A DNA stretch of 64,000 bases, taken from contig NC_134470.1 in assembly GCF_964194025.1 (NCBI RefSeq), positions 71,362,001-71,426,000 on the forward strand, given 5' to 3'. Made by a program: the position numbers and the translations under genes. This stretch comes from Convolutriloba macropyga (taxonomy: Eukaryota). Position 1 is the first letter of the stretch; every line of letters starts with the position of its first letter. Of the stretch, positions 3,051 to 53,466 are shown in pieces. The notes under the pieces are model-generated. The model saw nothing but the letters and a program-made list of their open reading frames with translations, made no database searches and was not told the origin of the DNA.

Positions 3051-3880
3051 GTCAGGATTTTCAAAACCAATAGTTGTGGACAGTTTGTTGTTAAATTTTA
3101 ACGCATTATAAACAAGGTTTGGACAAAAAACGTAGTGAAAAATATCCAACTCCCCCTTGTTTAAGATACTTTTCAGAAGTTAATACTGAATGACTATAAC
3201 ATCTTGCCAAAGACAGTTCATTTACCGCTGAAATCTATTTTCAGTTTTCCAAAAAGCTTTAGAAATAAAACGCTATTATTTTCAGATATGAAACAAAAAA
3301 GCTGTTTTGCTTGCGTCTGCATAACTATGCGATCCGGCGTTCTCACTGTTCTTAAATTGACTATTACAGTTTCCAAGGGAAGAACATCCAACAAATATAG
3401 CTTAGTAATGTTTTTTGTATTTTTTCTGATTTGTCATCTCAAACCATTTGTATCATATCTACGTAACTATGGAACTTGGGTGCTTACTTTTCAAAAATCC
3501 GTTATCAACATACCGTGAAAAAAGGCATTATCTAAACTGTCTGTAAATCTCGATGTTTCATTTTGAGAAAATTGTTTACAATTCAGTCTAGTAGGTATCA
3601 AAGATTCTGATGGCTTAGCAATTATCTAAGTGTTTCATTTCGAGTTGATATTCCAGGCTGAATTGTTTAATGGGATATATAATATATTTTACTGTGGATA
3701 AACTTTTTGGCGGTCGTTATGTTAGATCCATCTAGCTGTGATTTTTTGCTGTCTAGATTGCAAAAATTTGGAAACGTAACGGACCGAATTTTTTTAAAAA
3801 AAGACATTTAACAAAGTGTGTCTGTTACCACAAACATGCGTTTTTATTGTATTACTTTTGACATTTTTTGTTGTGTTCTT

Positions 3881-5831
3881 AATAGCCGCGTCCTCAATTC
3901 CAGGCGGCTATTATTGCGCTCCTAATTTTTACAATTCAAAGAACTTGAATTGAGTTGTGGCGCTGTCTTTTTTTACGACGACTCGAAGAGGAGTATTGGA
4001 AAACTCTTTTAAATCAATTTTATTGGAGTGAATTTTGAAGCGGGAAATGAAACACGTGAAAAAATTTTGAGTGATTTTGTTGCCGTACAAAATGAAGAGT
4101 GGGGCGAAAAGAGAGCGGTTTTTGTTCATATCTTTGTTTTCTAGAGAGCGGGAAATTGATTGAGATGTGAAAAAATTTCTTTAAGCGAGCGAAATTTTTT
4201 GTTCATGTGCGGCATTTAACAGCAGTTTTTTTCATTTTTTTGGTTAAGAGGTTTGGTTATGATTTTTGTTTTAATTTTAGGCTTTTTTTGGTAGTGGATT
4301 AAAGGTTTCTGAAAATTCATCTGAATTTTATGCTAATTCGGAGGTTTTTCATGTATTTTGCTCATTTTCGGGCTAATTTTAGAGTTTTTCGACGATTTTT
4401 TTGTTTTACTGGCTCAAATGGGTATTGAAACCCTTATACGTGACCAAATTTTCAATAACAATCGGTTAAAGTTTTGTGATGAGTCATTTTTATTGTTGAA
4501 ATACGGCAAAAAATGGCGAAAATGGCAACTATTTTTTTGCAGTTTTTCGTTTTTCTTTCTGTTTTTTTAGGCAACTTAGTTTTCTTAGACTTTTATGACT
4601 TTCTTATTGGTTTGCGAGCATCTGGATACCCCATTGGCTTAAAGAATATTTTCTTTGGGTTTAAATTCTTTTGTAATATTAAGAATCATAGTAACTTTTT
4701 CCAGTTTTTTAGTGCAAGTTGTTTTAAGAGCTTTTTTTTCATAATTTGGCCTCAAGTTTTTTTAAGAAAATCACATAGGTGGTTTTAGTTAGTACTAGTT
4801 TCTTTGATGAAGTAGTTTTGGCAGAGATAGTTATTTCGGGATCTCAATTTATAACAAAATTTGTTCAAGAGTTTTTTATCATATTTCAACAGATTTGATT
4901 TTTTTGTTTTTACTTTTTTGTTTTATTGTTTTGTTTAAGATAATCATAAATTAGTGGTGGCACGTTTTGTCTGACGAGTAGTTGGGTGGCGTTTAAATGG
5001 ATTTCCACTTCGAGTCGTTTCCGGAATTCTTCCGGCTGTTTTTTTAAGATCTGTTCACACATTTTCATGATTTTTGAAGTTAAATTGGAATACTGATTTT
5101 GGTCATGCCGAAACACGAAGTGGAGCGAAAAAGCGAGTGGTTTTGCGGCGTGAAATGTCTTTGCTCTAATTTTAAATTATAGTGAGAAAACGGTGTTTGA
5201 ACAAAAATTCGCTTTCTCGCTAGTGGTTTTTTGTTCACATGCGGTTTTTGTTCACATGAGATTTCACTTTGATTTTTGCTGTTTTTCTTCATTTTTTAGG
5301 ATTGGATTTTTTCTAAATGGTTTTCCCAATCGATTCATAGTCCGTTCTAGGTCTAGTTTTCTGTTTAGTAAATGAAAATTCTTTGAATTTTGCGTCAGGA
5401 CTTGTCCTGCTATGTTTTTTTTACTTCGTGTAACAGATTTTTGTTTCGTCTTACCGTGACGTCATTTCTGCATTTAGCGTGACTTACCTCAAAAAAAAAA
5501 TTCTGAACTCACTTATGGAACTTCAATTTTTATGAACCTTTACTCGTTAAAGATCAATTGTGTGCATCTAAGTGGTGCCAAACTTATATGCCCTAATTCT
5601 TGAGTATTAGTCTTGAGTTTTTGATTTCGAATATCAATTTTGAGAAAGCTCTTTTAGGGCTTTTTCCTTATAGACCGTATGTGTCATAAAATTGACAGTA
5701 CGTATCTAACCCAAAAAATCTAGTGGTCTACTAAAGGACTTTTTGTCAATCTGCCTATCTTGTTTCGTTAGTTGTTTTATTTCATGGAAGGCCACATCGC
5801 GGCTATTCTCCGGCAATCTGCCGGCTATGTT
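3881..5831 (+). mobile_element. triple-nested HINE-like elements: B (3881-5831) containing D (3931-5414) containing C (3975-5038)
   Basis: Left ends AATAGCCGC, ACAATTCAAAGAA and ACGACTCGAA occur in succession, each after a T-run. The matching right ends occur in reverse order: TTCGAGTCGT + CCGGAA..TTCCGG, TTCTTTGAATT + CAGGACTTGTCCTG, and GCGGCTATT + CCGGCAATCTGCCGG. Confidence 0.8.
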
Positions 5832-8582: not shown

Positions 8583-9060
8583 AATAGCCGCACAGCGATA
8601 GCTGGGGCTATTATTGGCCTTCTCTTGGTTTTTTTTTTATTTCGTCGCGATTTTTGTTACGACCATATGACGTCACAACCACTTCCAATCTGCTTTTTGT
8701 TCATTCGTTCATGCAATTTCAACTGAAGTGCGTGTGTGACGTTATTTTTTGCTCTTAGTGGAGCGAGTTTTGTTCATTCGCGTGATTAAATTTTGGTCAC
8801 ACTTGACTAACCTCACTCTCAAAAATGACTTCCTGAGTTTGAAATTGACCTTAATTCAAAGAGATAAGGTCAAATGAGTGTGTGTCACTCTAAATGAAGG
8901 TTATTTGAGAGCAGCTAATAGAGGCAGCAAAAACTTATACAGATTTTTTATCAATATATAACATATCAGCCTTCAATGAAAAGACGAATTTTTTTGTCTG
9001 TCTTTCTACTGTTTTTTGAGACTGCAGATCAAAGCTATTGCGGCTATTTCTGCCAGCTCT
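8583..9060 (+). mobile_element. HINE-like family B, uninterrupted copy
   Basis: 5' AATAGCCGC..GGCTATT hairpin and 3' GCGGCTATT. The body matches 9718-10140, 25275-25690 and 55821-56266. Confidence 0.7.
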
Positions 9061-9088
9061 GACTGCCTTTTTTTAATTGATTTTCATA

Positions 9089-9606
9089 AATAGCCCCCGA
9101 CAGCCTCTCAACGGCTATTATATAGGCCCCCTACTTTTTTTAAATTCGCTATACCTTTTGATCTCGTTTTTTTGGACATAAGTGAGGATTTTCACGTTTG
9201 ACTCATGACTTACCTCACTCACTGTTTCAACCAAATAGATTTCAATTTCTTTTGCACCTTGAATTACGCAATGTAGTGAATGTTAACAAAAACGCGCGGC
9301 ATAAAGAAACGGGATATACCGATAAAGCCCAGCCATTATGTCATAAAGCAAGCATTAGGTTATCAAAGTTCATTAGACGGTTGCTAGCTGACATTGGTAT
9401 TAAGCTTAATAGCCTTTAGATTAGAAAATGATTTGAGTATAGTTTTAGAAACTAACTGAAATTACACAACGAATTACATGAAAGGCTTTTTGGAACTTGG
9501 GAAAAAAATTCTGTCAATTTGTCTTCTTTTGTCTTCTGTTTCAATCTCAATGTTCGTCCAGCGCGTTAATGGTAGCTATATTTCGGCAATCTGCCGGCAA
9601 TGTTTG
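9089..9606 (+). mobile_element. HINE-like family B, second body type, uninterrupted
   Basis: 5' AATAGCC..GGCTATT and 3' GTAGCTAT..TCGGCAATCTGCCGGCAATGTTT. The body matches 23761-24186 and 41701-42040. Confidence 0.65.
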
Positions 9607-9717
9607 GGTTTTTTTAAATGATAACTGAGTAATTTTCGCCAATTTTGTCTGTTTTTACATTTTTTTGCCTATTTCTTCTGAATAACATTTGAGTTCTGTG
9701 GTTCTTTTTTGTTGTTA

Positions 9718-10948
9718 ATAGCCGCACAGCGATAGCTGGGGCTATTATTGGCCTTCTCTTGGTTTTTTTTTTCGTCACAACTTTTGTTACGACCATATGA
9801 CGTCACAACCACTTCAAATCTGTTTTTTGTTCATTCGTTCATGCAATTTCAACTGAAGTGCGCGTGTGACGTCATTTTTTGCCCTTAATGGAGCGAGTTT
9901 TGTTCATTCGCGTGATTAAATTTTGGTCACACTTGACTAACCTCACTCTCAAAAATGACTGAGTTTGAAATTGACTTATTTACTGTAATTCAAAGAGATA
10001 AGGTCAAATTGGTGTGTCACTCTAAATGAAGGTTATTTGAGAGCAGCTAATGGAGGCAGCAAAAACTTATACAGATTTTTAATCAAAATATAACGTATCA
10101 TCCTTCAATGAAAAGAAGAATTTTTTTGGTGTCTTTTTTACTGATAAGTTGTGTTTACACATTTTCATGAATTTTGAAGTCGTATTGGAGTGGTGATTTT
10201 GGTCATGCCAAATCATGAATTGGAGCGAAAAAGCAAGTGCTTTCGCGGCGTGAAATTTATTCACTCTAATTTTAAATTAGAGAGAAAACGGTGTTTGAAC
10301 AAAAATTGGCTTTCTCGCTAGTGGTTTTTTTCACATGCGGCATTTTCTCTTTGGTTTTGTCTGTTTTGCGATTTTTGGATCGGATTTTTTTTTCTAAATG
10401 GTTTCCCAATTCATTCTTAGTCTGTTCTGGGTGTAGTTTTTGTTTAGTCACTGAAAATTCTTTGAATTGTACGTCAGGGCTTGTCCTGCTATGTTTTTTA
10501 ATTCGTTGGGTAAAAAATTTGTTCCGCTTTATCTTGGGTGACAGCTTGTTCAACATTCTATATGAAATCTTTTGACCTCTTCTGGCTAGATTCATTTGTC
10601 GCTCAAAGTACTTTTAAACCGCAGTTGCTGAGCAAAGCAACCTTAAGTAAACAGAATCATTAACAAAAACGAAATCAGAAACTTGATTAACCCATAAAAA
10701 CCCAATTTTGAATACACTCTACGTGCACTTTGTTCTGATAAGTCTTAGTTATCATCTCTAATGCTTTTTGGTATTGATATCCTTCTTTCATTAAGAAACA
10801 GGAGTATGCCTAACTACAATATCCAATCAAAATGTTTCGTAAAATTTTCATTGCTCTTTTTTTAATTTTCTTCTGTGCTTTTAATCACAACCTGGGTAGT
10901 GTTAATCAATGGGAGCTAATTTCCAGTAATCTGCTGGGTATATTTTTT
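9718..10948 (+). mobile_element. composite B + truncated D + B 3' end
   Basis: 9640-10140 duplicates ~8505-9010. A D body runs ~10150-10494 and ends CAGGGCTTGTCCTGCTATG. A B-type end (CCAGTAATCTGCTGG) lies at ~10912-10948. Confidence 0.55.
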
Positions 10949-11610
10949 TTACTTGCTTGTTGATTTATTGAGCACGGATTTTAGTAGGTTTTTATCTTTG
11001 TTCAGCGTCCTTTTCTCTTATCTAAATGTGAAGTCATGCCAAATTTGTCATGAACTTTCAATAGCTTAAATTTGAAAGCTCAGTATTTAGCCAACATCTG
11101 CAAGCATCAAGTTAGCTTTCGGGAGAACATAGGGAACTAAAGACAGGCTAGTAAAATAATATTGTTGACTGGTTAGGTATTGAGACATACTGCTTCATGG
11201 ATTTCGAGGTATCATATAATTCCCATTTCCCAAGTAACCTACTTTCCGCTGTGAAAATTGCAGGATAAAAGATTCGAAAACAGTTTGTTTTAGTTGTCAA
11301 AAAGCAGTCTGAACCTTTTTACGCAACTTTATGAACCAATGGGCGCCTTCAAAAACTTATGTTGGTAAACATATTGCTCTCGAACACAAAATAGGTAAAA
11401 TGTTTTCATTCAGTTATGACAATTAAGTGGCAAATTACTGACAGCATGTATAGCGCAGATCGAAAATGGGAAATCGTTGGATAGAATGTAGCCTATCTAC
11501 CTGGGAAAGGAAGGGGAGATGCAATTGTAGTGCTCCGATTAAGTGAATAACTCAAGCCCTATAAACGACCCACAAAATTTTTATCAGTGAAGCAAAATTA
11601 GATATTTTTA

Positions 11611-11800
11611 ATTGCTCTCAAACGAAGTTGGTAGCATTTATATTAGTCCTGTTGGTCTTTTTTATACAATTTTCCACTTGATCAATTTTTTGTCAGACGC
11701 TTGTAACGTTTCGTTCCTAAATACTGGATAATCATGTAAAGCCCGGAGGGCATTAAATTGCTGAGCACCTCTCTTAGAGCTCTGCTACTGTACAATTCAT
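11611..11800 (+). mobile_element. 5' part of a HINE-like family A element
   Basis: ATTGCTCTCAAACGAAGTT..TATTAGTCCTGT matches the 5' end of the 43484 copy. No 3' end found. Confidence 0.6.
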
Positions 11801-16801: not shown

Positions 16802-17408
16802 CGAATCATCCCCGGCAGAGGTGACTTCGAGATAGTGCTCAGGGATGTGTTATATTAAATGACATGACGTGCACCCCGAAAAACTCATAGTAGTGAAGAA
16901 TTTGATAAACTTGCATGATAGTTTGTACTGCTTAATACCCTGTACTAGAGATTTAGTTTTCGTGTTCTGGGTGAAAATTTTGGGCAATTAGGCTAGATGA
17001 ATAGATTATCAAGAGTTCTTAACTCCCAATTTGTGCAACGTAACCAAGTAATTTTGTTTCTTAGCCCAAGGTTTTCTTTAACGGTGATGCAAATGCGAAT
17101 GTCTAGTTGCGTTAAATATGCTTTTGGTTTAAAGTTTTTTTATTTCGGTAATAGTTTTTTCCTTAACAGTATCACAAAACCAGCAAATGAGTGGTGAATG
17201 CCGAAATTATAGTCTGTCCCATAAAGTTGAAATAACCGAACGTTCGAAGACGTCAAAAACAGGCAATTCAGCATCAAATTGGTCATTTGGATTTCAACGT
17301 TTTTTCCATTAAGCTTCATATTCGGTCCCATAAAGTTGCACTGCAAGCAAACGCTCGAAAAACTCAGCATGTAAATGAACAGCGAAGCGCTGATCTCTGC
17401 ATGTTTAC

Positions 17409-17773
17409 TTGCTCTTGAACGAAGTTCATAACAATTATTGTAAAAGTGTTGGTCTTTTTTATGCAAATGTTTCGCTTGACCATTTTGCGTTTTTCTTCTA
17501 ACATTATATAACATTCTTTGACTTATGAAGTGACTTTTTCACGCTTTTGTTCTTCATTTTTTAGTGATTTCTATTGCTCTCACTCCGAAGTAAAGCTTGT
17601 TGCTAATATAAATTCGATTACAGCATAGCAAAAACAAGGGCTGGATAGCCGCGTGGTCAGTGCATCTGGTTATGGATCGGGAGGTCAGTGTTTCGAATCC
17701 CGGCGGGGTGAAATGTTTTTCTACCCGCATGTCGTTCGAGAGCAATTCTCCCAACATTAGTCGGTTTATGTTT
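17409..17773 (+). mobile_element. HINE-like family A carrying a tRNA-derived cassette
   Basis: Family A subTIRs and 3' hairpin. The body is homologous to 30965-31320. Confidence 0.75.
17638..17710 (+). pseudogene. tRNA-derived sequence (tRNA-Arg(ACG)-like) inside a mobile element
   Basis: A box TAGCCGCGTGG and B box TTTCGAATCC. GCATCTGGTTATGGATC resembles the tRNA-Arg anticodon arm GCGTCTGACTACGGATC as I recall it. Stems pair poorly. Confidence 0.6.
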
Positions 17774-18180
17774 AATAGCCGCGGAGTGGTAGCGGCTATT
17801 AGTGGGGACATCGAGTTTTTTTAATTTGTTGTCTCCATCGATGATTTTTACGACCTGACTTGTTGGAATGGACTTTTTCAAGGACTTCAGTGACTTCTAC
17901 TACTTTGCAGTTAAAATTTGTGTGCGTGACGTCATTTCTGCTTTTAGGTTAATTGCGGGACTTACTTCACTCAAAAAAGTGACTTCTGAACTCACTTATG
18001 GAACTTTAAATGTTAGAACATTTACTAGTTAAAGATTAATAGTGTGCATCTAAGTAGTGCCAACCTTATATGCCCTAATTCTTGAGTATTAGTCTTTGAG
18101 TTTTTGATTTCGAATATCAATTTTGAAAAATCTCTCTTTGGGTTTTTCCTTATAGAACGTATGTGTCATAAAATTAACAG
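17774..18180 (+). mobile_element. HINE-like family B fragment abutting a family A 3' end
   Basis: AATAGCCGC..GCGGCTATT follows TATGTTT directly. 17925-18180 matches 5455-5700. Confidence 0.6.
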
Positions 18181-18899
18181 TCCGAATAGCGTTGCAACTT
18201 TATGGGACATACTATAGTCTGTCTCATTAAGTTGAAATGAGCGAACGTTCGAAAAATGCCAAAAACGTGCAATAAGTTTTCATTCATCTATTGTTTTACA
18301 TGTTTTAAATTTGAACTTTGACCTTTGAAATCTGTCCGGTAGTTTTCGAAACGTTCGCTTATTGTTCCGACCCCCTTGAGGGCGGACTATATATTCAAAT
18401 GGTTTTTTTTCAATTAATTTTGACTGATCGATATTTTCACTGTAGGGGTTGCGAGTGGTATCATTAAAAAGCCCGTTCATCGTAGAATATGAAATAAAAA
18501 AGATTAACTACAATTTGCGTTATTTTCCACTCGCATTTTCCAGATTTTTTACCTAAAATTTAGTCACTTTTGTTAGAATTTGTTAAAAATTTTAAATATA
18601 GTGTTGTTGATTTTTTTAAAGACAAAAAAGTATTATTGACTGTTTTGATTTTTTTTGGCAAAATTTAGCTTTTTCCACCAGAAATTATGGCACGAAATAA
18701 GCTTCTTTAGTCCACTTAAAGTTTGCCGGAAGTACAAACCAAAAACCACCAACATAATCTTTGTAAATTTAAAAGGGGGATAATTCGGATTGGAATCAGT
18801 CGTTTTTTTAATTAAAATTGATCTTTTTTATAATAAATAAAGAACAGAACATTTCAAATCAAAGCGCAGATTCAATTGGCCTCCTGAGCAAATCTAAAT

Positions 18900-20741: not shown

Positions 20742-23700
20742 ATGCGAGGTGCTTTGTTCTCTGAATTTTGTCGGGTGATTGGTATCCCTAACGCTTCTCA
20801 GCTTCTCGCACAAAAGGGAACTTTAAACTTTGTGAACAAATTTTATATTCCGGCATTTTACAAAGCGGTTCCCTACAACAATCTTGATGCGTTTAACCCC
20901 AACTCGAGGTCAAACTTTTACAAAGGATGGGATGGGTTCCGCCGGGGAACTGAAACTTATGCGGAGAAAGTTGATGATGTTATCGATCTGTTTATGAAGA
21001 AACGAGGCGCCTTGTGTTTCCATAGATGCATTGTATCTTCGTTGGTTCTGAATGATGCCGGAATCGATAGTTACACTGGTCTATCGATAGCGAGGAGAGA
21101 AATGAACATTCCACACAATTTAATATTCGTCAGAAATGCCACAACCCCGGGAAGTTTGCACATGGGTGATTTGGGCAATAGATTTTCGCCTATGTTTGAA
21201 ATAGTGGATATGGAGTTTGAGAGAGAAAGTGTGTTAAGCAAGGGTCCAATCAGTGAATCGAAGGTTATTCGAACCAATCAGGAAACTGGTAAGGTTTTTT
21301 TTAAGTGTCGGTTTTAAAGAAAAATCAATCGAAGAAGTTTTTAATTCGGAGTCGCTTGAGCAAGAAGTGCAAATAACGTGAGACTTTCGAGATTTAAGGC
21401 TTGTGCCAACTTGGATAGTTTTTAATAGCCGCCCTCATCTTCTCAGCCGGCTATTATAGCGCTCCTATTTTTTTACGACTCGAAGAGGAGTATTGGAGAA
21501 GTCCTTTTTTACGACTCGAAGAGGAGTATTGGAGAAGTCCTTTTTATTAATCAATTTTATTGGAGTGATTTTTGAAGCGGGAAATGAAACGCTTGAAAAA
21601 ATTTGGAGTCATTTTGGTGCTGAACAAAAGTTAAGAGCGGATCGAAAAGAGAGTGGTTTTTGTTCTTGCCGATGTTTTTGAGAGAGCGAAAAATTGATGT
21701 GTGAAAAAATTTTCTCTAAGCGAACGAAATTTTTTTGTTCACGTGCGGCATTTGAAAGCAGTTTTTTTGCAACTTTTGATGGTTATGAGGTTTAGTTATG
21801 ATATTGTATTAGTTTTAGGCTTGTTTGGATAGGAATTGAAGGTTTCAAGTAGTTAATTTGAGTTAAATGCTAATTTGGAGATTTTTGATCAGTTTTGCTG
21901 ATTTTCAGACGAAATTTAATGATTTTTTGCCTGATGTTTTGTTTTAATGCTTTAAGTGGGATTTGAATAGAAGCTTGTTACGTAAGGAATGTTCAGGTAC
22001 CAATTAACTAAAGTTTTCTTGGTATAAATTATTTTTTTTCTAGAAAATTTGACAGAAAAATTGCGAAATTTTAAACCATTTTTCCTGATTTTTTTGCATT
22101 TCTTTTTTTTTCAAATCTTAGACAAGTTTCTTAGCCTATAATGACTTGGCCATTGTTTTGCGAGATTTTCATTGCTATAGTTGCAAACGAACTTTACTCG
22201 GGTTTATGTTTCCTTGTACTATTAAAAAAACTCATTAAGTTTTTCTAGTTTTTTTTGTTCAATTTGTTTTCGAATGCCGTTTCTATTCTTCCTTAATTTT
22301 TTTTAACATTTGTGTCAGTATTCATAATAGTTGTTCTAGTTGTTTGGTCATAAGTATGGGCAATTTTCTCCTTCAAAACGTTGCCGGAATTTTTCCGGCA
22401 ATGTTTTTTTACTTCCTCGAACAAAAAATTGTTTCGCTTTAGAAAACGGGATAAACCCATAAAGCCCAATTTTAGATGCCCGCTATTTGAAAGTCGTTCC
22501 TATAATTCTTAGTGACCATCTCTAATGCTTATTGGTCTTGATGGAAGCCCCTATAGCCTCTCTCTGAGAAACAAGTATGTTCAACTACGAAATGCCATCA
22601 AAATAAATCGGACTTAAAAAATGATTTTTTACAAAAATCTTCTTTTTTCAATATCTTTTCTTTCAATCCCAATCATGCTATTTGGAATCAACGGTGGCTA
22701 TTTTCCGGCAATCTGCCAGGTATGTTTCGATATTTTTAACCTTATTTTTTAATAGCCTTGATGATTTTAACGTAGGCTATGATTATCTTTTTTTAAGGAA
22801 CAGGTTTGAGCATTGATTTTATTAATAGCCGCAAAGCGTTAGCAGAGGCTATCATTGGCCTTCTCTTGGTTGTTACTACTCGAAGAGGAGTTTTAGTTTT
22901 CTTTACCGCATTTAGGATTCATTCTGACGGCGTTTTGACCTAAAAGAAAGAGTAAAATTACTGTAGAAACTGATTTTTTTCTGAGCAAGAGAAGTGTTTT
23001 GATCATGCAGTGCATTCAGTGAATGAGTTTTCGACTTTGAAAAATGTTTTTTTTGCAACATGGTGCATATAAATAGCTGTTTTTGTCCAATTGGACCGGT
23101 TTTTCCGTTTAATAGACGTTTTTTTTAGCCGGTTTCTTTGTTTAGTAGCCGTTTTTTGTCTGAGCCGGGTGTTTTTTTAATTGATAGCCGCTGTCAGCCT
23201 GAATAGCTATTATTAAGGCGCTCTCCTTGAGAATTTGAATGTATTGGGGCGCTGTCTTTTGTTAAGATCTGTTCATACATTTTCATGATTTTTGAAGTCA
23301 AATTGGAGTTGTGATTTTGGTCACGCCGAAAAAGAAAGTGGAGCGAAAAAGCGAGTGGTTTTGCGACGTGAAATTTTTTTACTCTAATTTGTAGTGAGAA
23401 AACGGATATTGACCAAAAATTCGCTTTCTCGCTAGTGGTTTTTTGTTCACATGCGGTAAATTCACTTTAATTTTGCTGTTTTTTCAATTTTTGGATCGGA
23501 TTTTTGCTAAATGCTTTTCCCAGTTCATTCATAGTTCATTCTAGGCCTAGTTTTTTGTGTGAACCAAACTTCCAATTCTCGTTAGTGGTGTTGTGTTCAA
23601 CTGAGGCATTTTGAAACTGATATTCTGTTTTTTATTTTTTTAATCTGAATTTTTAGAACTGGTTTTCCCAATTCACTCATAGTTCGTACTAGTTCTAGTT

Positions 23701-26700
23701 TTTTGTTTAGTCAATGAAAGTTTTTCGAATTGTACGTCAGGACTTGTCCTGTTTTTTTTTAATTCGCTTTACTTTTTGCTCAGGTTTTTTTTACATAAGT
23801 CACTACTTTCGGTTTTGACTTCTGACTTACTCACTCACTATTTCAACTGAATGGATTTTAAATTCTTCACATATTGAATTACGTAATGTAGTGACTACGG
23901 TGAAAAGAGGAAAATCAAACGAAACGGGACAGAAATTTGAAGCCCGGTCACTAAGTCATATTGCATTAGGTTATGAAAGTTCATTAGAGTGGTTGCTAGC
24001 TGACATTAAGTTGTATAGCTTTCAGTTTGGAAGCTGAATTAAGTGTAAAATTAGAATCCAACCGAATATGCACATTTTGCCCACCAGGTAAGAACACTTT
24101 GAGACTTAGGAAAATTCTGTTTCAATCCCAATGTGTGTCAAGCAAGGTCAACGGTGGCTATTTTCTGTCAATTTGCGGCTATATGTGTATTTCTTCGCGG
24201 AAATAAGTGTTGATTCTGTATCAGTTTATCCTTTGAAACACAAGCTACAGTTTTCATAGGAGCCTTAAATATGTGTTAAGTGTAAAATAGGCATATACAT
24301 TTCCATTTTCAGTGAAATTTTGAACTTTTCCTTGATATCTTCATTTTAGATCTTTAAGTTGATTTATTTTCAAATGTCAGTGCACATTGCATCTTCCCGT
24401 TGATAATCGATGCATTAATTGCATCTTTATAATGTGAGTTAATTATGTTATGAGATTGTGACATGCTAATCCGATTTTGGCGTTTTTTGTCCAATTTTTC
24501 TCATTTTTTGTTTGTATTTTGGTTTTTTAGTACTAGCGTTTTTTAGTACTAGCGTTTTTTAGTACTAGCGTAAAGTTTTTTGCACCTTGCGAAGTTTTGT
24601 ATTTTGTTTTATGAGTAATTCAGTTGTTTTTTGGCGTTGAGTCTTGAAATTCACGAAAAAAATTTTCATAAGCGCAATTTTGAAATAACTTCCAAAAAAA
24701 ACCTGTTGGTTTTTTGTCAGTGTGTCCATATTCGTTACATTCTAGCATGCATCATTCTAGCGTTCTCCTAAACAAATAGTCTTTTTCAATCTTATTTTAG
24801 CAGTTAATTTTTAAAAAATTAATTATTTTAGCCTTTTTGGTTTGCAATTTATTCATTTGATAATGCAGCACTGAGAATTTGCTGGAATTTTTTTTAAAAG
24901 TTTTTACTGATTTTTACTTTCTGCGAATTTTCCTGGAGCCTTTGTTTTAGTATTAAGGGTTTTTGGCCTGTGATTTTTAATCAGTCGTTTGTAATTTAAT
25001 TTTTGCACTAGTTTGAACACTCTTAAGTTTTCTTGAAATCTAAATTTCAGCACTCTTTTTATTGAAAACTTAATTTTGTAGGAATTTTATCTTCTTTATG
25101 CTTGCATAATTGTCTTTTGGGTCGCAAAGTTGATTAATTTTTATTAAATTTTTAAATCAAAATTAGTGAGGTTAAGAGCTACTGTTATGTGACAGGTAAT
25201 GGGTTCGGCTGCGAGTACATATTTTTTGTGAAGTTCCGACTGTTCGGGTCGCTTCCGGAATTCCGGCTATGTTTTTTGTCAACAGGATTTTTGTTACGAC
25301 CACATGACGTCGCAATCACTTCAAATCTGCTTTTTGTTCATTGGTTCGTGGAATTTTAACTGAAATGCGTGCGTGACGTCTCAGTGCGTGTGTGAATCTT
25401 AGTGGCGAGTGTTTTTTCAATCGCGTGATTAAAATTTTGATCAGACATGACTTACCTCTCTCAGAAATGACTTCCTGACTCTGAAATTAACTATTTACTT
25501 TTATTCAGAGAGATAAGGTCAAGTGAGTGCGTGTTGCTCTAATTGAAGTGTATTTGAGGGCAGCTAATAGAAGCAGCAATAATTTAAACAGACTCTGAAT
25601 CAAAATATATCCCAAAAATTTCCTAAAATTGTTTACTGTCATCTTTTTGAAACTGCGAAGCTATTGCGGCTATTTTCTGGTATGCAATCAGCTTTGTTTG
25701 TATATTAGCTGCCATCATCTTAGCGGGCTACTTACTATTGCACTCCGATTTTTACGACTCGAAAAGCAGCAACGGTGACGTATTTTTTGATCGGTATTTT
25801 TTTTCGAGATGTGAAGGGAAATGCCAATTGTGAATAAAGTGTATCGGTCAGGCGGTTTAACAAAAGTCAAAAGCAGAGAACTAAAAGAGCTAATTTTTTC
25901 AAGCACAGATTCTTCAAAGTATTTTTGTTTAAAGATTTTTTGTGCTCTAATATTTTGGATCAAAGTGGTTTCTATCAATTGTATCAATCAGTAATTGTAC
26001 GCTTGAAAGCGTTTTGACCGTCTGAAGCAAACATTAGAATTTTTCATGCTTTTCCAAGCTAGTTTTGCCGTTTTACCGCTTTATGCTGTTTCAACGGTTT
26101 CTACCTTATTTAGTATTATTTGGTATTATTCTGTTATTTTTTTTTATGATATATTTAGTACTGTTATTCTGGTTATGTATGATATATTTAGTAATTTTGG
26201 TAAGGTTATCGCAGAAAAACTTTACAGAAGGTCAATTTTGTTGCTGGGACGTAGCTGTTTGTCGAGAATTTTGTAGAACGTTTTATTAGATTGATTTTTT
26301 GGTCCCATTCTACTCGTCTCTGGTTTCACTGTATGTAATTTAATGCTTTGTCGATCATTGTTTATCGTTCAGAAAACAAGCGTCAAATGCATCGCATGTT
26401 CTGTGCCAAATAATTGATTTGGAGTGGCAAGGGGTGAAGAGCTTTTACGAAATGATATTTTACAATGATATGCATAAATAATTCAATTTGTTTAGTGAGA
26501 AGTTTGCTGAGTCCTGAGAATTTCCTTTTAGTCTATCCCGGATCCTTGTGGCAACGTCTTTTTTAATCTGTCAAACGAATTTTTCTGCTTTTCTTTGGTT
26601 CACAGCTTGTCCGACATGTTGGGAAAAGCGTTTTGATTTATCTGGGATAATTCCGTTCCCTCATTCTGCTCTAAGTTATAAAACTGCAATTACTCAACAA

Positions 26701-28863
26701 AGCAATATGAATTCATGAATTGAACAGAATCCATATCGAAAAACCAAATCAAAATGAACAGGGGTTAAACCCTAATGAGTAGTTATCGATTCACAGTATT
26801 CGAACTTAGTTCTCAGTAGTCTTATTTACCTGATCTAATGGTCATTGGTGTTGACACTAATCCTTGTGTTATCTCATTTAGAGACAAGGGTATGCCAACC
26901 CCATTTAAAACTGCATTTAGAAATTTTTTTGGTAAAACAATCAATTTTCTGTTTTTCACTCACTACGGGGTTTATGGGAATCAATTGGTGCTATTTTTTT
27001 GACAATCTGCCGTTTTTTACATTTATTTTAACATATTAACAATGATGACTAGGACTGGTTTTTCGGATTGCATGTGAATTTACGAACTGAATGAAGCGAT
27101 GGTGATGTAAAATTTCAATGTAAAATTCTGATTTTGCACTTTCACGCTTCATTTCGTTTTTGCTTGATCTGAGAATTCCTCTTACTATGAAAATACGAGT
27201 CGGTTGCTAACATAAACCCGATTGGAAGCGATGAAGTATGAGAGCCCCTATCGCTTGGTGGTTAAAGTAGCGAACGATCCGGAAGGTCAGGGTTGGAACC
27301 CATCGAGAATCGGTTTTGCGCCCACAAAACTTTTATCTACCCCCTCTGAAATAATCTGCCTCGCATGTCTTTTGAGAGCACTTCATCCGACAGTTATCGG
27401 TTTGTTCTTTTGTTGTTGAACCAATTTGCGGAGAACTGAGTATAAAGAGTGTTTAACTACTCAACAGCTTTTATTGGGGGCGTTCGCCCCTTTTTACGAA
27501 TCGAAGAGGAGTTATAGTGCTTTTGGTCAGTGAAGCAAAATTTAAAAAAATCAATACCGCGCGCACGCCTGGTAAATTGTTAAACAGAAGAATGCTCCAA
27601 AAAAGCAGAGAGAATGATATTGGATTGTGTTCTTGCCTTATTTCAGGAGGGAGCTAAAAAGGTAGGTAAAAAATTTCGCTTAGTAAGAAACATTTTTTGT
27701 TCATGCGCCAAAACTTTTAATACCATCATGATCTTAATTACAATTGATTCAACTAATTTGGCATTGTGGAATGTTTTTTTGACAATTTGAGGCACTCGTT
27801 AAAATTTCGGACGCAAATGAAGTGTTTTTTGTCGGTTTGTCGTCCGAGGCTTGTTACCGGATGATTTTGCAGTATATGGTTTGTTTTTGGATTGCAATTA
27901 AGTTTTTCTCGGCTTAGTATTTGATCTATATCGTTTTAATAGTGTTGTTGGTTAAGAAAATTGGTTAAATCAAGTCGAATTTTTCGTCAAAATCTTTAGT
28001 TTTCTCTATGGAAGTTATTTGAATCAATTTCCAGAAATTTTAATATGTGGTGGTTTTGGTCTCGCCAGTACTCGAAGTGTACTTGAATTTTTTGTTCATG
28101 CTCAAGGTCATGCTCAATTTAAATCAGCTTTTGATGCATTAATTCATGTAATTTTGGATTGAATTGCGTCTCACGTCATGGTTCCACCCACACTTGTTGA
28201 ATTTTTAATTCACTCACATGAATAATTTTTTTGGTCACTTGAGGTACCTATTTTTTTAGTTCTCATTCTTTTCAGTGGTATTTTGAGACTTCATGTCTAT
28301 ACAAAGCTATGAAAGCTATTTTTGACATCTGCCTGCTGTTTAAGTTTTTGTACGACATTCGTATTAATTTTCAACCTTCAAACGAACAAGGCAAGGAATT
28401 TTGTTTAGATTCTAACTTGATGCCTTATCAGCAAACCTTTCGAAAGCTGAGCCAGCCAGACGCTAATTTCAGCTATTATTTTGATTTCGACACCAATGAA
28501 ATGGACACATTCTCGGAAGATAAATCAGAAATACATTTCAATTTCTCCGAGTCGGATGGGTCCCCGTGCAAATCATTTGGTACTGATTTCCAAGATCTAC
28601 TGATGCAAAGAATGATAGGAGTCATCGGAATTGACAAAGCTGGACGGTTTACAGAATATGCCAACAACACAGTAAAACGATATGACAAGGAAGGATATGT
28701 TACTGAACTCACAACTTTGCCTAATAAACAAAGTTTGGTTAACAATGTAGTGAAAGATTTTCCTCAATTTACGGAAACGATTATATCCAATGCGATCGAC
28801 AGTGCTAGGGAGAATGGTAAATATGATGAAAAATATGACTCACTTTGGCCACAATTTTCGTAA
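20742..28863 (+). CDS. arylamine N-acetyltransferase-like protein, paralog a
   Basis: Exons 20742-21288 and 28409-28863 are joined by a phase-1 GT-AG intron of ~7.1 kb at the same position as paralog b's last intron. Motifs AVPYNNL, KKRGALCF, PH and GDLG correspond to the NAT-family PFENL, RGGxC, His and Asp motifs. Confidence 0.75.
21424..22727 (+). mobile_element. nested HINE-like elements: C (21475-22403) inside B
   Basis: B 5' hairpin and T-run, then a duplicated C 5' end (ACGACTCGAAGAGGAGTATTGGAGAAGTCC x2). C ends with CCGGAATTTTTCCGG. The B body then resumes and ends GGTGGCTATTTTCCGGCAATCTGCC. Confidence 0.7.
22824..24186 (+). mobile_element. nested HINE-like cluster (B and C 5' ends, then D inside B)
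   Basis: B left end at 22824, C left end at ~22874, second B left end at ~23183, D at ~23230-23751 and B right end at ~24153-24186. Confidence 0.6.
27130..27410 (+). mobile_element. degenerate tRNA-carrying family A copy
   Basis: GTTGCTAACATAAA, then a tRNA-like GGTGGTTAAAG..GGTTGGAACCC segment, then a 3' end CGCATGTCTTTTGAGAGCA..CCGA..TCGG. Confidence 0.5.
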
Positions 28864-30964: not shown

Positions 30965-31320
30965 AATTGCTCTTGAACGAAGTTCATAGCAATTATTGTA
31001 AACGTGGTGGTCTTTTTTAGCAAATTTTTCGCTTGACCTTTTTGCGCTTTTTTTCTAGAACATTCTTTGTCATCTCAAGTGACTTTTTCACGCTTTTGTT
31101 CTTCATTTTTGAGTGATCTCTATTGCTCACTCCGAAGTAAAGCGTATTGCTAATATAAAGTTGGCTGCAGTATAGCAAAAATAAGGGCCAATTAGCATAG
31201 TCGGTGGTGCATATGGTTATGAAGCGGGAGGTCAATTGTTCGAATCCCGGTGGAGTCAAATGTTTTTCCTCCCGCCTGTCGTTCGAGAGCAATTCTTCCG
31301 ACATTAGTCGGTTTATGTTT
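30965..31320 (+). mobile_element. HINE-like family A carrying a tRNA-derived cassette (31185-31258)
   Basis: Family A subTIRs and 3' hairpin. Internal GGGCCAATTAGCATAGTCGG..GTTCGAATCCCGG is followed by TTTTT. Confidence 0.75.
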
Positions 31321-31905
31321 AAAATTAAATAATTTTAGGCGTAGAATTTTTTCCTGCTGACCGTTTCTGTCAATTTTAAGTTTGTTCAATGGTTCAATTG
31401 CTTAATTAAGTTTGTTTGTAGGGTTATTGTTAATACGTGAAAACAAAGCTCTGATGGCACATTTTTATAGAATGAATAAATCAATCCTGCAGTTTTTGTA
31501 GTCGTCTTGAGTTTTTTCCGGTGCCTTTGGGTATCGTTTGGTTGATCAACTAATCAACAGGCTCAGCAATTTTTAGAGAGTATATTAAAAGATTTTACAG
31601 GTTTCTTAGATTTTGTCTCCTAGTTTCTCTTTTTCGCTTTGTTTTTCTACTTTTCCTGGATGTATCGCTTGTTTTGTTTTGTGTATTTCGTCTGTCATCT
31701 TCTGCGCCCGCTATTCTAGCAGCCCTTTCTTTTTTTAATTCGAATAAAATATTGTTTTGCCTTTAACCTACTTCACAGCGTGTTCAACATTTTGCGCGAA
31801 TCTTTGACTTCGTTGGGTATTTTCATTCTGCTTTCATTCTCATCAAGGTCCCTTTCAACTCTAGTTGCCGTCAAAAACAATCTAAAATGAGCAGAGTCAT
31901 TCTTT

Positions 31906-32782: not shown

Positions 32783-33964
32783 ATGTGCGATGCATATGAG
32801 TGTGAGCAGAATGATCGATCTACTCTCAATGGCAGCATCGAATCTCTCTCACTTTCTCAGAGCTCTTCCAAAAGCGATCGAAGAAAAACACAGTTTGACG
32901 ACTCCAAATGTAAAAAGTGTGCCTCGCCTAACCCAGCTGTGAAAGTGCACACACAGGGTAGCCACTGTCGAGACTGTTTCCTCACATACGCCAATCACAA
33001 GTTCAGGTCGACTATAGGAAAGGAAGGAATTATCCCTTATGGGGCTAAAGTTGTGCTTGGATACTCGGGCGGACCGGCAAGTACTGCCATGATTAAGCTA
33101 TTGGGCGACAGCTTACGTGAGAAAAAGAAGAAAGCAAACCTTAATTTTCAAGTTTATTGTATACACGTGGATTTTAGCATTCCGATCAATAGTGACACAA
33201 AGTTTGAGGATTTATCGGTGACCTCTCAAATGGAATCTTTTTGTCATTCTAATGGTTTTGAGTTCCAAATAATAAAAGCTTCTGAGTGGTTTGAACAAAA
33301 TACAAAAGAGTGTCTTGAAAACTTTTTAAACATCAAAGATGCCACGTTGAGACTTGATCGTGAATTACAAATTGTTCGCAAGATTTTAACGCAGTTTTGT
33401 TCAGCGAACAAATACGGTTGGCTGATGTTAGGACAATGTCTGTTTCGTTCAGCGGTTAACGCTCTAACTCAAGTATGCCAAGGCCGCGGTGTTGATTTGG
33501 GCAGTATTTGTAAGTTTGCAGATTTTCGTCTGTCGGATGAAAGTACGATAGTATACCCAATGAAAGAGTTTACGAGCAAGGAAGTCGCGTTTTTTAACCA
33601 ATTTAACCAACTGGAATCTTTCAAGTTTACAGATGAAGAAACTGCGACAGAATCTAATTCGTCGATACAAAGATTAACGGAGAACTTTCTACTCAACTTG
33701 CAAGTTGATTTCCCAGCAGCTGTTCCCAATGCAAGAAATAGTGGCGAAAAGGTGCTTCCCAGAAAAATGGACAATGGAGAAACTGGTAGCGTGTGTTCTA
33801 TCTGCTTGATGCCTTTTGATAATTTTAATTGTAATGAAAACGATCTCGACAATGCCAGAACTGCTGCAGAATTTTCACGACAGTTATGTAACCCCACTGG
33901 TAATTTTGACCATGTAAATAGTGGGAAATATTGTAGTTTTTGCTGTACAGAGGATCCATTTTGA
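32783..33964 (+). CDS. CTU2: cytoplasmic tRNA 2-thiolation protein 2 (intronless)
   Basis: 393-aa ORF with CKKC and CRDC, KFRSTIGK, the PP-loop-like GYSGGPASTAM, PMKEFTSKEV, SIQRLTENFLLNLQVDFP and C-terminal CxxC pairs. Confidence 0.92.
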   Translation: MCDAYECEQNDRSTLNGSIESLSLSQSSSKSDRRKTQFDDSKCKKCASPNPAVKVHTQGSHCRDCFLTYANHKFRSTIGKEGIIPYGAKVVLGYSGGPASTAMIKLLGDSLREKKKKANLNFQVYCIHVDFSIPINSDTKFEDLSVTSQMESFCHSNGFEFQIIKASEWFEQNTKECLENFLNIKDATLRLDRELQIVRKILTQFCSANKYGWLMLGQCLFRSAVNALTQVCQGRGVDLGSICKFADFRLSDESTIVYPMKEFTSKEVAFFNQFNQLESFKFTDEETATESNSSIQRLTENFLLNLQVDFPAAVPNARNSGEKVLPRKMDNGETGSVCSICLMPFDNFNCNENDLDNARTAAEFSRQLCNPTGNFDHVNSGKYCSFCCTEDPF

Positions 33965-35800: not shown

Positions 35801-36229
35801 AATTGCTCTTGAACGAAGTTCATAGTAATTATTGTAAAAGTGTGAGTCTTTTTTTATGCAAAATTTTTGCTTGACAATTTTGACTTTTCGAGTGACTTTT
35901 ACGCCCTTGACTTTTTGCGTTTCGCATGATCTAAAGTTCTCTCTCAATCACAATTTCAAGCAGCTGAACTCAATTGGCGGCAATTTTATACCAAGAGTCA
36001 AATTAAAAGTGCGCCGAAACTGGTGCGATTTTTTACTTTAAATCTTAATAGTTGTATATGTTAACCTCTAATGTGGTTATTTGAAGCCCACTGTTGAACT
36101 TCTTAGTCCCATTTAGGCTCCCTCTCCCTCCCTCCCCCTCCCCCCCCCGACTGAAGCAGGCTGCAATTCATTAAAGCTCCCACTAGTCGTTCGAGAGCAA
36201 TTCGTCCGACGTTTAGTCGGTTATGTTTT
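35801..36229 (+). mobile_element. HINE-like family A
   Basis: Same ends and body as 1726-2124, with an expanded C-rich tract. Confidence 0.75.
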
Positions 36230-39129: not shown

Positions 39130-42100
39130 ATGGATTCTCTCAAAACACTGTCTCTAAGTGCAACTGCCGCTGCCGGAGCTTTAACTGGCTTTTCTGTTCG
39201 CTTAGTCGTGAATCCGTTAGATGTAATCAAGATTCGGTGGCAGCTTCAAGTTGAGCCAATATCTGGTTCCAGTGATATTGCTGGAAAATATAGAACATGG
39301 TCTCAAACTTTGAAGAGCATCGTGGGAGAAGAAGGAGCCAGGTAGACAAGCTGAATTGTCTAATTTCAATAATATTACAATAAAGCTATAATGGTGTTGG
39401 CAGTGATGTTTTTTTGATCAATCATAACAATTTAAATCTTCAAATGAAGCAATGTGATCAGATTCATTATAGTATGTATGCCATGTATGTGTGCAAATGG
39501 GCATATGTAGTCTTTGGGTTATAATCGTGAATTTTACATTTTTAATAAAAAAATAATGAGTGATTTTCCGCTAAATTCGTGTAGTAAGGCGTAAATCAGA
39601 TGCACAAGGCGAATCCACGACGCGCTCAACGCGCACCCATTGACCCGCCAGAGACAATTTATTACACCACTAACTATAAAATTTTTGAGCTTACCTTATC
39701 TAATTTTCAAAATTTGTCTGGCTTGACTAGCAAATTGTTTGACCGCCACCGCTTTTAAGTCCTATTATTATGTATGAAATAGTTGCAGACTGCGGAATGA
39801 ATAAAAAACATTGCAAACAAAGATAACTTTTAGTTATTTACGTGAAAAAGGAAGCGTGAAAAAAATACGGTTCGTTAACGTAACCGCTTGGCATTTTTCA
39901 CTGTTCATGGATCCATCAATGCCAAAAATGCTCTAAGACGAAACATTTTAGTGAAATATGTTGACAACGAAAAACATTCTTTTGTTCTTTTTTAATAGCC
40001 GCGAAGCAATAGAGACTATTATTGGCGACATCGTGGTTTTTTACAATTCAAAGAATTTGAATTGTATTGAGGCGCTGTCTTTTTTTAAGATCTGTTCACA
40101 CATTTTCATTTTTTAAGTCAAATTGGAGTAGTGATTTGGGTCACGCCGAAACAGGAAGTGGAGCGAAAAAGCGAGTGGTGTAGTGGCGTAAAAAATTTTC
40201 ACTCTAATCTTAAAGTAGAGTGAAAAAACGTTGTTTGAACAAAAATTCGCTTTCTCGCTAGTGTGTTTTCTGTTCACATGCTGCAATTTCACATTGATTT
40301 TAACTGTCTTTTTTTTAAATTTTTGGATCGGCATTTTTTTTCTAACTAGTTTTGCCAATCCATTCATTGTGCATTCAAGGTCTAGTTTTTTGTTTGATCC
40401 AACTTTCTTTTTTTTCGCTAATGGATTTTTGTTCACATGCGGGATTTTGGCATTGTTTTTTAACTTTTTAAATTTTTTTTATCTGATTTGTTTGGAAATA
40501 GTTTTCACAATTCACTCATAATCCGTTCTAGGTCTACTTTTTGTTAAGTCAATGAAAATTCTTTCAATTGTACGTGAATTGTACGTCTGCTATGTTTTTT
40601 ACAATTCAAAGAATTTGAATTGTATTGGGGAGCTGTCTTTTTTTAAAGATCTGTTCACGCATTTTTGTGATTTTTGAAGTCAAATTGGAGTAGTGATTTC
40701 GGTCACGCTGAAACAGGAAGTGGTGCGAAAAGGCGAGTGGTTTTGCGTTGTGAAATTTTCTTGCTCTATTTTTAAAGTAGAGTGAGAAAACGGCGTTTGA
40801 ACAAAATTTCGCTTTTTCGCTAGTGGTTTTTTTGTTCACATACGGCAATTTCACTCTAACTGTTTTCTTTCGATTTTTTGGATTGGGTCTTTTTCTAAAT
40901 GGTTTTCCCAATCCATTCATGGTTCATTCTAGGCCTAGTTTTTTGTTTGAACCAAATTCCATTTCTCGCTAGTGGATTTTTGTGCACATGCGATGCGGCA
41001 TTTTGCCATTGATTTCGTCTAATTTTTTTTCTGATTTTTTAGAAATGGTTTTCCCAATTAACTAATAGTCCGTTCTAGGTCTGATTTTTTGTTTATTCAA
41101 TGGAAATTCTTTGAATTGTACGTCAGGACTTGTCCTGTTATGTTTTTTACAATTCAAAGAATTTGAATTGTATTGGGGCGCTGTATTTTAAGATCTGTTC
41201 ACTCATTTTCATGATTTTTGAAGTCAAATTGGAGTAGTAATTTTGGTCACGCCGAAACAGGAAATGGAGCGAAAAAGCGAGTGGTTTTGCGGCGTGAATT
41301 TTTTTTTGCTCTATTTTTAAAGTAGAGTGCGAAAATGGTGTTTGAACAAAAATTCGGTTTCTCGGTAGTGGTTTTTTGTTCACATGCGGCAATTTCACTC
41401 TGATTTTAAATGTTTTCTCAATTTTTTGGATCGGATTTTTTTTCTAAATGGTTTTCACAATCCATCCACAGCTCATTCTAGGCCTAGTTTTTTGTTTGAG
41501 TTAAAATTTCATTTCTCGATAGTGGTTTTTTCGTTCATATGCGGCATTTTGACATTGATTTTTTTTTCTTATTTTGTGATCTGATTTTTTTTAAAATGGT
41601 TTTCTCAATTCACTCATAGTCCATTCTAGGTCTAGTTTTTCTTTTTAGTCAATGAAAATTCTTTGAATTGTACGTCAGGACTTGTCCTGCTATGTTTTTT
41701 TAATTCTCTTTACCTTTTGATCACGTTTTTTGTTTCACATAAGTCGCGATTTTTAAGCTTGACTTGGACTTATTTCTCTCACTGTTTCTACTGAATGGAT
41801 TTTAATTTCTTTCGCGTATTGAGTTACGTAATGTAGTGATTAAGGTCAATGTCAAACGTGCAAATTGAAAAGAACGGGTTAAACCGATAAGGCCCGGTCT
41901 TTAAGTCATAGTGCATTAGGTTATCAAAGTTCATTAAAGCGATTGCTAGCTGGTGTTATTATTATGCTTAATAGCCTTCAGTTTAGAAGCTGCACTAAGT
42001 GTAATTTTGGAATCTAACCGAATATGCAGAATTTACGCACCAAAGGGCGGTTCTTTGTATTAAGGGCGGTTCTTAAGCTTATTTTGACCCCCCTACCCCC

Positions 42101-43343: not shown

Positions 43344-43483
43344 TGTGGTAATTTTAGCTTCTTTTGCTTCGGAAAAAACGCTGCCTTAAACATGTTATAA
43401 AGATAATTGTATAATAATATAAAGACTTTTCATGTAAAGTATTTCCAACAGCTTAATATAAACGTCTTCTACATATCTTATTC

Positions 43484-43809
43484 ATTGCTCTCAAACGAAG
43501 TTTGTAGCAATTATATTAGTCCTGTCGGTCTTTTTTATGCAATTTTTCGCTTGACCGATTTTTCGTCTGACCCATTTGACTTTTCGTCCTCAAAAAGGGG
43601 ATAAACAGGTAGCGCCCAGGGGGCATTTAGTGCTCTAAGAGCCTTTCAGCTCAAACTGTTTTGGAGACTTATACTTATACTTATGGTGCGAAGGGCGGTT
43701 CTTAGAGGTTGAGACACCCCCCCCCCCCCCCCGTGGCTAGCTACTGACGAAGCCAACCGCTCACCGGTCGTTTGAGAGCAATTCGCCCGACGTTAGTCGG
43801 TTATGTTTT
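43484..43809 (+). mobile_element. HINE-like family A
   Basis: Perfect subTIR pair ATTGCTCTCAAACGA / TCGTTTGAGAGCAAT, then hairpin CCGAC-GTTA-GTCGG and TTATGTTTT. Confidence 0.8.
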
Positions 43810-44877: not shown

Positions 44878-45148
44878 GTTACATGACAGTTTAACCAATT
44901 CCATTTTACCCAATGTCATTTTAGCCCACCTGCCAACTTACTCAATGTTCTTTGATATTTTGGCTCAATTATCCAATGTTCGGTTGTGATAGCTTCATAT
45001 CAAGTCCCACGGGCCATTTAATTGTATAGTCGGCTAAATAATCGGTCTGGTAATTTTAACAATAGGGTAAATTGAAGTTGGCGTTTGGTAAAATGGCAGT
45101 TCGTGTATAATGGCATTGGAAAAAAATTGAATTGCGTAAATTGCACCG
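44878..45148. mobile_element. foldback-type MITE sharing its core with 7456-7840
   Basis: Inverted arms (CCAATTCCATTTTACC versus GGTAAAATGGCA). The core GTTCGGTTGTGATAGCTTCATATCAAGTCCCACGGGCCA is the near reverse complement of ~7625-7663. Copy at ~63010-63283. Confidence 0.55.
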
Positions 45149-49132: not shown

Positions 49133-49138
49133 CCCCAC

Positions 49139-53334: not shown

Positions 53335-53450
53335 TGGAGTGTGAGCAGGCAAAACAGTTGTGAAAAGAAAAGGTACTAAGCAGAAAAGGATTATGACTGT
53401 CAACAGCAAATTAGTTTTGCTTTGGAAATTAATTTTATGACTTAGAAATT

Positions 53451-53466
53451 TGCTGGGCCCATAACC
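53451..53466 (-). other. primer binding site complementary to an internal segment of initiator tRNA-Met
   Basis: The + strand TGCTGGGCCCATAACC is the anticodon-arm region of tRNAiMet and abuts the 5' LTR. Confidence 0.9.

Follow-up and report, generated by a model that had tools for sequence, protein, structure and literature searches.

Non-autonomous elements of the HINE/DINE-1 type are defined by subterminal inverted repeats (sometimes palindromic), a palindrome at the 3' end and a variable number of terminal T's, and they insert into T-rich DNA without a clear target duplication (Thomas, Vadnagara & Pritham 2014, PMC4067079). Several of their relatives are known to insert near or inside their own kind. 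In the FoHeli Helitron2 elements of Fusarium the 5' terminus is found repeated, by its first 31, 65, 73 or 85 nt, before a single 3' terminus. The model put forward is that a copy inserts near the 5' end of another and that a later excision runs between the outer 5' terminus and the first 3' terminus (Chellapan et al. 2016, PMC5148889). Alternative left termini have been described in Xenopus HLE2 (PMC11417382), and the HINEs of oysters occur nested in each other (PMC12628747). Among the Helitron1 elements of maize and bat, which are canonical (5' TC, 3' CTRR, A/T target), maize Helitrons prefer sites near or inside other Helitrons, with nested intermediates giving rise to elements with multiple termini (Dong et al. 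2011, PMC3288121, with reference to Yang & Bennetzen and Du et al.; discussion of Thomas 2014); what is described is proximity and not one nucleotide-level site in a 5' head. Our literature search found no report of a landing site in HLE2 5' heads that is nucleotide-precise and used across families, and nothing on the Helentrons of acoels. The targets of Helentron/Helitron2 transposases have so far been described as "T-rich DNA". What is new in the locus described here is a fixed landing site within the 5' head, for which insertion near or inside elements of the same kind is a partial precedent.

The window (the whole stretch of 64,000 nucleotides of Convolutriloba macropyga DNA that was analysed) is AT-rich (G+C about 35%) and has an excess of T on the + strand. 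Approximately a quarter of it (16.4 kb) consists of short non-coding repeats, every one of which has + orientation. Within these we curated 31 5' ends (hereafter heads) and ~26 3' ends (tails) belonging to families that we call A, B, C and D and that have one common end grammar. The head, 30-56 nt long, starts with an A after T's and carries at nt 1-16 a subterminal inverted repeat (subTIR) that usually also forms a hairpin with itself, followed by TATT[GA], 8-15 nt and a T-run, after which the body starts, nearly always with an A. Of the 31 heads, 25 have the TATT[GA] motif, which precedes the T-run by 8-15 nt in nearly all of them; in random 45-nt windows its frequency is 12.5%. In the tail, the complement of the 5' repeat comes first, then a G+C-rich hairpin, (C/T)(T/A)ATG or CTG, and T's. 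Fourteen distinct tails with a perfect hairpin, one of these motifs and T's lie on the + strand, and no credible one was found on the - strand of the window. In family A, for example, the head repeat AATTGCTCTTGAACGA matches its complement in the tail with 1 mismatch. All 5' ends are preceded by T's and all 3' ends have T's on the far side, as expected of insertion into T-rich/TT targets. Filled sites hold more T's in total than empty ones (T5+T8 vs T10, or T7+T7 vs T7), and these surplus T's are possibly the element's own or a duplication, the same ambiguity between terminal T's and duplication that has been remarked on for HINEs (PMC4067079).

Judged by end structure, A, B, C and D look typical of non-coding HINE/DINE-1-like elements of the Helentron/Helitron2 (HLE2) group. 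They resemble the published HINE/DINE-1 elements in having subterminal inverted repeats that lie a few nt inside the 5' end and tens of nt inside the 3' end, a short 3' hairpin, variable terminal T's, T-rich/TT sites, internal tandem repeats and no coding capacity, and they differ from them in the common module of TATTG, spacer and T-run that closes the head; in that work, moreover, clustering was only a possibility and there was no fixed landing site inside the 5' end (PMC4067079). A canonical Helitron (HLE1; 5' TC, 3' hairpin plus CTRR, A/T target) was rejected, the elements starting instead with AATAG, ACAAT, ACGAC or AATTG and ending, inside T-runs and without CTRR, with CTATG or CTG plus T's. 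The window's ORF list shows no ORF of at least 150 aa in the copies of A-D. Pfam scans of all 12 window ORFs of at least 150 aa returned copia-type retrotransposon proteins, CTU2 and mitochondrial carriers and no Rep or helicase, and the window has no autonomous element, which would encode Rep/helicase and, in Helentrons, also an endonuclease; the rolling-circle assignment, like any role of Rep, is for this reason structural, and with no autonomous partner in the window Helentron and Helitron2 are not separable.

Some further features of the elements and their surroundings deserve mention. Family D has an internal ~148-bp repeat, a feature common in HINEs, in one or two copies (40043-41701; 5046-5422), the D of the studied nest having only one. 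Copies of family A lie at 1726-2124, 11610-11760, 17407-17773, 30965-31322, 35801-36228, 43483-43808 and 61593-61942; several contain poly-C tracts and some a tRNA-like cassette (~17640-17715, 31190-31265), which is also seen at 27235-27310. ARAGORN and Rfam gave no match over the window, this cassette included, which is too diverged for either. All ~26 HINE-type tails and all 31 heads are on the + strand, as are 12 of 12 independent non-nested insertions, set against 299 (+) and 210 (-) T-runs outside elements (P about 0.002). The host genes seen, a CTU2 exon (32783-33964, Pfam) and mitochondrial carrier ORFs (Mito_carr, 42786-43343 and 46571-47317, Pfam), are on the + strand as well. The - strand carries a copia-type LTR retrotransposon at 48522-54066 (Pfam); its LTRs (48522-49127 and 53466-54066) are 97.5% identical and its gag/protease, integrase SH3 and RT pieces are spread over several ORFs.

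The nest studied occupies 3881-5831 on the + strand. The preliminary description had placed three left ends, each behind a T-run, at 3881 (B, AATAGCCGCG...), 3931 (D, ACAATTCAAAGAA...) and 3975 (C, ACGACGACTCGAAG...), with right ends closing in mirror order at 5038 (C), 5414 (D) and 5831 (B). Direct reading bears out the left ends, and the right ends hold within the few bases of ambiguity that terminal T's allow. The head part of the outer host B covers 3881-3930 and includes a palindrome (3881-3889/3904-3912), the TATTG motif and the T5 run at 3926-3930 that is the landing site of D. The head part of D, the middle element, follows at 3931-3974, with a palindromic subTIR and the T7 run at 3968-3974 where C has landed. 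The innermost C is complete (3975-5045; head 3975-4010, 3' subTIR 5004-5018, hairpin 5021-5035, CTG 5036-5038, T7 5039-5045) and has a homolog at 21511-22410. Next come the body and tail of D (5046-5422; 3' subTIR 5379-5389, hairpin 5396-5409, CTATG 5410-5414, T8 5415-5422) and those of B (5423-5831; 3' subTIR 5798-5807, hairpin 5810-5824, CTATG 5825-5829, TT to 5831), this B body being of a class (class III, see below) with a homolog at 17925-18187. Heads and tails are paired through their subTIRs, the 3' arm of each lying just upstream of the respective 3' hairpin: the 5' end of B, 3881-3890, is complementary to 5798-5807 (10/10), D pairs 3933-3951 with 5371-5389, and C pairs 3978-3992 with 5004-5018. 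Taking C out restores, as had been proposed, the junction of an intact D, an exact match to four uninterrupted D copies (40043, 40601, 41149 and 55285). No empty copy of the outer B subtype (B2) exists within the 64-kb window; its paralog at 21424 holds C where 3881 holds D, and the start of the body behind the guest is identical in both (ACTTC...). The interval 3881-5831 is confirmed, to the base, as a true three-level nest. Its assembly took two successive same-strand insertions, of D into the T-run closing the B head and then of C into the T-run closing the D head.

The same arrangement recurs in the window. All of the recurrences listed earlier (8130, 21424, 22824, ~25706, here placed at 25703, 39994 and 55234) were found, together with further cases at 23183, 10145, 25278 and in an A head at 61.6 kb. 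A second 5' end stands directly behind a head T-run, 30-56 nt from the outer 5' end, at 11 junctions (3931, 3975, 8179, 21475, 21511, 22875, 23229, 25753, 27495, 40043 and 55285), mostly between different families and with matching outer tails. This is like FoHeli, where a 5' segment of less than 200 nt lies directly before another 5' terminus; that system shows self-insertion within one family, mostly as duplicated termini and without target statistics, whereas the window has cross-family nests of several levels, mirror-ordered tails, a defined T-run and empty paralogs (PMC5148889).

The hosts of these guests are best described one by one. The B1 host at 55234-56265 (+, class I body) has D at 55285-55830 in its head T-run; its empty paralogs are at 8583-9075 and 9717-10136, and excising D in silico gives the junction of these empty copies (8583, 9717). 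B1 9717 has 35 nt of 5' flank in common with B1 8583 and is therefore a local duplication. In the B4 host at 23183-24190 (+, class II body) D lies at the head T-run (23229-23760, eroded junction), the empty paralog being 9089-9603; D excised in silico from 23183 and from 39994 leads back to the empty B4 at 9089. At 39994-42040 (+) a B-type head is followed by three D units placed head-to-tail (40043, 40601, 41149) and a class II body. The longer interval 39994-42285 is a chimeric element (B3-type head, three D units, class II B body), continued from ~42040 by the 3' portion of an element of A type that has poly-C tracts and, at ~42255-42285, an A-like tail. The B2 host at 21424-22725 (+, class IV body) holds C in its head T-run, the C head being doubled (21475, 21511) before a single C tail (22403-22410). 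At 10145-10950 (+) the tail of a head-less D (10145-10500) is joined directly to base 1 of a B body of class IV whose own tail ends at ~10950. Seen together with its left neighbour, 9717-10500 is a 3'-truncated B1 fused to a D that is devoid of its 44-nt head, with both breakpoints in T-runs. A guest tail (hairpin + CTATG + T6, ending at 25277) precedes a class I B body, 25278-25700, from its first base (25240-25700, +). Upstream, at 24519-24566, a 16-nt unit (a 10-nt palindrome-containing motif + T6) occurs three times before the element whose tail ends at 25277, either a stack of minimal heads or slippage. Lastly, the A copy at 61593-61942 (+) has a guest in its head T-run, with the guest tail ending at ~61654 and its start inside an N stretch (61393-61592); the empty paralog at 43483 is 95% identical. 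Both belong to a 2.3-kb duplicate pair (43522-45868 = 61655-64000, 94.8% identity), in which one A head is empty and the other carries the guest tail.

For statistics we accepted only strict nests, that is, those in which the host body resumes at its first base right behind a guest tail. There are nine: D in class III (3881), C in D (3931), C in class IV (21424), D in class IV (10145), D in class II (23183 and 39994), D in class I (55234), an unnamed guest in class I (25278) and a guest in A (61.6 kb). Three of the nine were scored via the right junction only, and the stacks at 8130, 22824, 25703 and 27452, with no recognisable host body, were excluded from the strict, independent count. The guest sits in the head T-run in all nine. 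The earlier proposal to compare head T-runs with T-runs at large yields a strong excess, in a sample that is one 64-kb window chosen for showing the pattern: P=5e-12 with 31 head runs among the 554 + strand runs of five or more T's (T5+) of the window as null, and P=8e-9 with 24 head runs among the 191 T5+ runs inside host-element DNA. The second null removes the effect of transposons being safe places to land. T-runs are plentiful (554 T5+, 271 T6+ and 114 T7+ on the + strand; 262 T5+ on the - strand). The same head T-run being used repeatedly across the window, it is a strongly preferred landing site of C and D, far beyond chance within the window, and not a matter of chance hits.

Simpler predictors of the site were also tried and rejected. 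The motif TATTR-N6-18-T4+ alone has 45 matches outside heads, all unused. Palindrome before a T-run is equally insufficient: 30 other + strand T5+ runs lie 4-25 nt past a perfect 7-bp palindrome and are unused, bar two behind element tails (5415, 22404). Nor is hairpin strength a sufficient determinant, the heads of D and A folding well and being rarely filled, whereas the B4 head folds poorly and is filled.

A way to see whether these nests are independent is to compare hosts and guests separately. The B bodies fall into four classes that are mutually dissimilar outside a common 3' terminal ~30 nt: class I (8583, 9717, 25278, 55234), class II (9089, 23183, 39994), class III (3881, 17774) and class IV (21424, 10501). 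D guests occur in all four. Among the D copies identity is 80-91%, and in their star-like tree just one clade has support (99/98): it groups array unit 41149, whose host is of class II, with D 55285, whose host is of class I. Identity is 75% between the class II hosts and 80-85% between their D guests. The comparison of flanks suggested at the outset has thus come out in favour of independent insertions, with the supported D clade spanning unrelated hosts, and D being in four classes with a star-like tree, descent of all nests from a single ancestral composite fails. The head T-run is shown to have been used independently in at least four unrelated host classes. Some of the stacks, among them B2 plus C at 8130 and 21424, may nevertheless be copies of each other.

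The traffic between families is asymmetric. The idea that the families target each other's 5' termini stands for C and D, which enter heads, mostly those of B; it does not for A and B. Every C and D copy in the window is either in a head or behind another D, while the 6 visible A copies and ~7 B copies are in ordinary T-rich DNA. B heads are filled in 8 of 13 cases, against 3 of 20 for the heads of A, C and D (Fisher p=0.009), a preference that may reflect recognition of B heads or partly an age effect, because the B hosts look older and so have been exposed for longer. The 3' ends also serve as landing pads, less than heads do: a new head starts within 30 bp behind the outer tail in 4 of 15 cases, where 0.13 were expected (P about 1e-5). 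D forms a head-to-tail array of three units at 40043-41701. Its units are 82-87% alike, and unit 3 (41149) is 91% identical to a D copy 14 kb away; as this unit has its closest relative elsewhere, the array seems to stem from several hits on a single T-run and not from a concatemer or local duplication. The Cg_HINE elements of the Pacific oyster are similar to those of the window in their internal tandem repeats, oligo-T targets and elements within elements, but no fixed 5' landing site has been reported for them and their arrays are of internal repeats, unlike the D array, which is made of whole elements (PMC7492417; PMC12628747).

Heads are in surplus over tails. For C the window contains 7 heads (every one of which was checked for a tail partner) and 2 tails (5038, 22403), and some head stacks have neither matching tail nor host body. 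For such surplus heads, slippage or a chimeric excision that begins at the outer head and stops at an inner tail is a better explanation than a series of separate new insertions, and stacks of this kind, bodies missing, fit the excision model of FoHeli (PMC5148889). Slippage between T-runs may be an added source, its signs being the C heads at 21475 and 21511, which are 36 nt each and identical, and the 16-nt unit repeated three times at 24519-24566. Head and body have also been reassorted: the body is of class II behind a B3-type head at 39994 and of class III behind a B2 head at 3881, and the head-less D at 10145 begins from this very boundary. These cases point to the head T-run also being a breakpoint.

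HUH enzymes cleave donor ends and target with one and the same active site. In the IS200/IS605 family (IS608) the HUH transposase uses a target that mimics its end-cleavage site, and insertion takes place in one orientation. Taken as an analogy, this single-strand insertion beside an end-site mimic is what may happen in the window, with the difference that IS200/IS605 enzymes are bacterial Y1 transposases with no helicase that find a tetranucleotide target via base pairing. The T-run/A junction of the head is 8-20 nt 3' of the hairpin. It resembles both the 3' end of an element (hairpin, TATG-like motif, T-run) and the 5' boundary (T-run/A), and by this common geometry heads, and less so tails, would mimic the cleavage site of the enzyme itself. 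A rolling-circle Rep would then be guided to integrate at the T-run/A junction that lies shortly 3' of a terminal hairpin. That Rep may be recruited to the 5' hairpin, as proposed in the preliminary description, is plausible. Repeated use of one head T-run would give head-to-tail arrays, and where transposition began at an outer head and terminated at an inner tail, chimeras carrying stacked heads would result. As a whole, the reading that combines HINE-type elements, a nest formed by two insertions, a preferred head T-run and a Rep directed to the T-run/A junction near a terminal hairpin is one that we consider probable. The broader proposition, that HLE2 transposases pick their sites by mimicry of their own terminus (hairpin, TATTG-like motif, T-run/A) so that heads and, less often, 3' ends become nucleotide-precise pads across families, is put forward more tentatively, as a possibility that we would somewhat sooner doubt than assume.

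The main rival to terminus recognition is single-strand accessibility beside palindromes. Single-stranded DNA is a requirement of HUH enzymes, and heads and tails, being palindromic, could extrude or breathe and expose their T-run to any rolling-circle element, a structural preference that would account for the insertions across families (D and C into the heads of B, D, C and A) and for the use of both heads and tails, which have only the layout of hairpin plus T-run in common. We judge it unlikely, given that the non-head sites with this layout are unused, bar the two behind tails, that occupancy does not track predicted hairpin stability, and that A and B show no preference for heads at all. 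A passive preference for long T-runs, of which heads would merely hold good ones, agrees with the known insertion of HINEs in T-rich DNA (PMC4067079) and with the 4-10 T's of the empty head T-runs, but it is contradicted within the window and is the least credible of the explanations considered: the + strand offers 271 runs of T6+ and 114 of T7+, and each host body has 6-20 other T-runs, none of them used (P at most 8e-9).

Two other explanations dispense with targeting or with insertion altogether, and both appear very improbable. In favour of the first, that the recurrences are copies of one or a few ancestral composites, moved or duplicated whole, are the match between 3875-4725 and 21418-22270, which covers the B head plus C, and the contiguous D plus class II body at 23230-24086 and 41158-42042; the excess of C heads over C tails and the published chimeric excision model (PMC5148889) are also on its side. 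As a sole explanation it is already contradicted by the presence of D in four unrelated host body classes, by the closest D pair (91%) being in unrelated hosts, by the empty paralogs of B1, B4, D and A, and by the different guests of the one B2 site at 3881 and 21424. Stacks and arrays could also form with no insertion, by slippage in T-runs, unequal exchange or rolling-circle concatemers, as the twin C heads (21475, 21511), the triple 16-nt unit (24519-24566) and the fusion of D 10145 and B1 9717 at T-runs would suggest. These processes cannot yield heterologous heads with mirror-ordered tails, and the similarity of only 82-87% among the array units, one of which is nearer (91%) to the copy 14 kb off, is against them too. 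The resemblance of the head junction to both the 3' end and the 5' boundary leads us to favour a model in which the Rep mobilising C and D recognises a terminus-like site.

A site defined to the nucleotide within a 30-56-nt module that is common to several families is a concrete substrate for biochemistry. It also provides a simple path by which single insertions could grow into arrays of whole elements and then into HINE-derived satellites, and a path to chimeric families with swapped heads; the origin of arrays and that of chimeras are both debated for Drosophila, bivalves and fungi. For annotation it is a warning: in genomes of this sort stacked 5' ends are numerous and will be mis-paired by tools that look for element boundaries. 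If true, the rule of terminus mimicry would alone explain the nests, the tandem arrays of whole elements that seed satellites and the shuffling of heads, bodies and tails that produces new HINE families.
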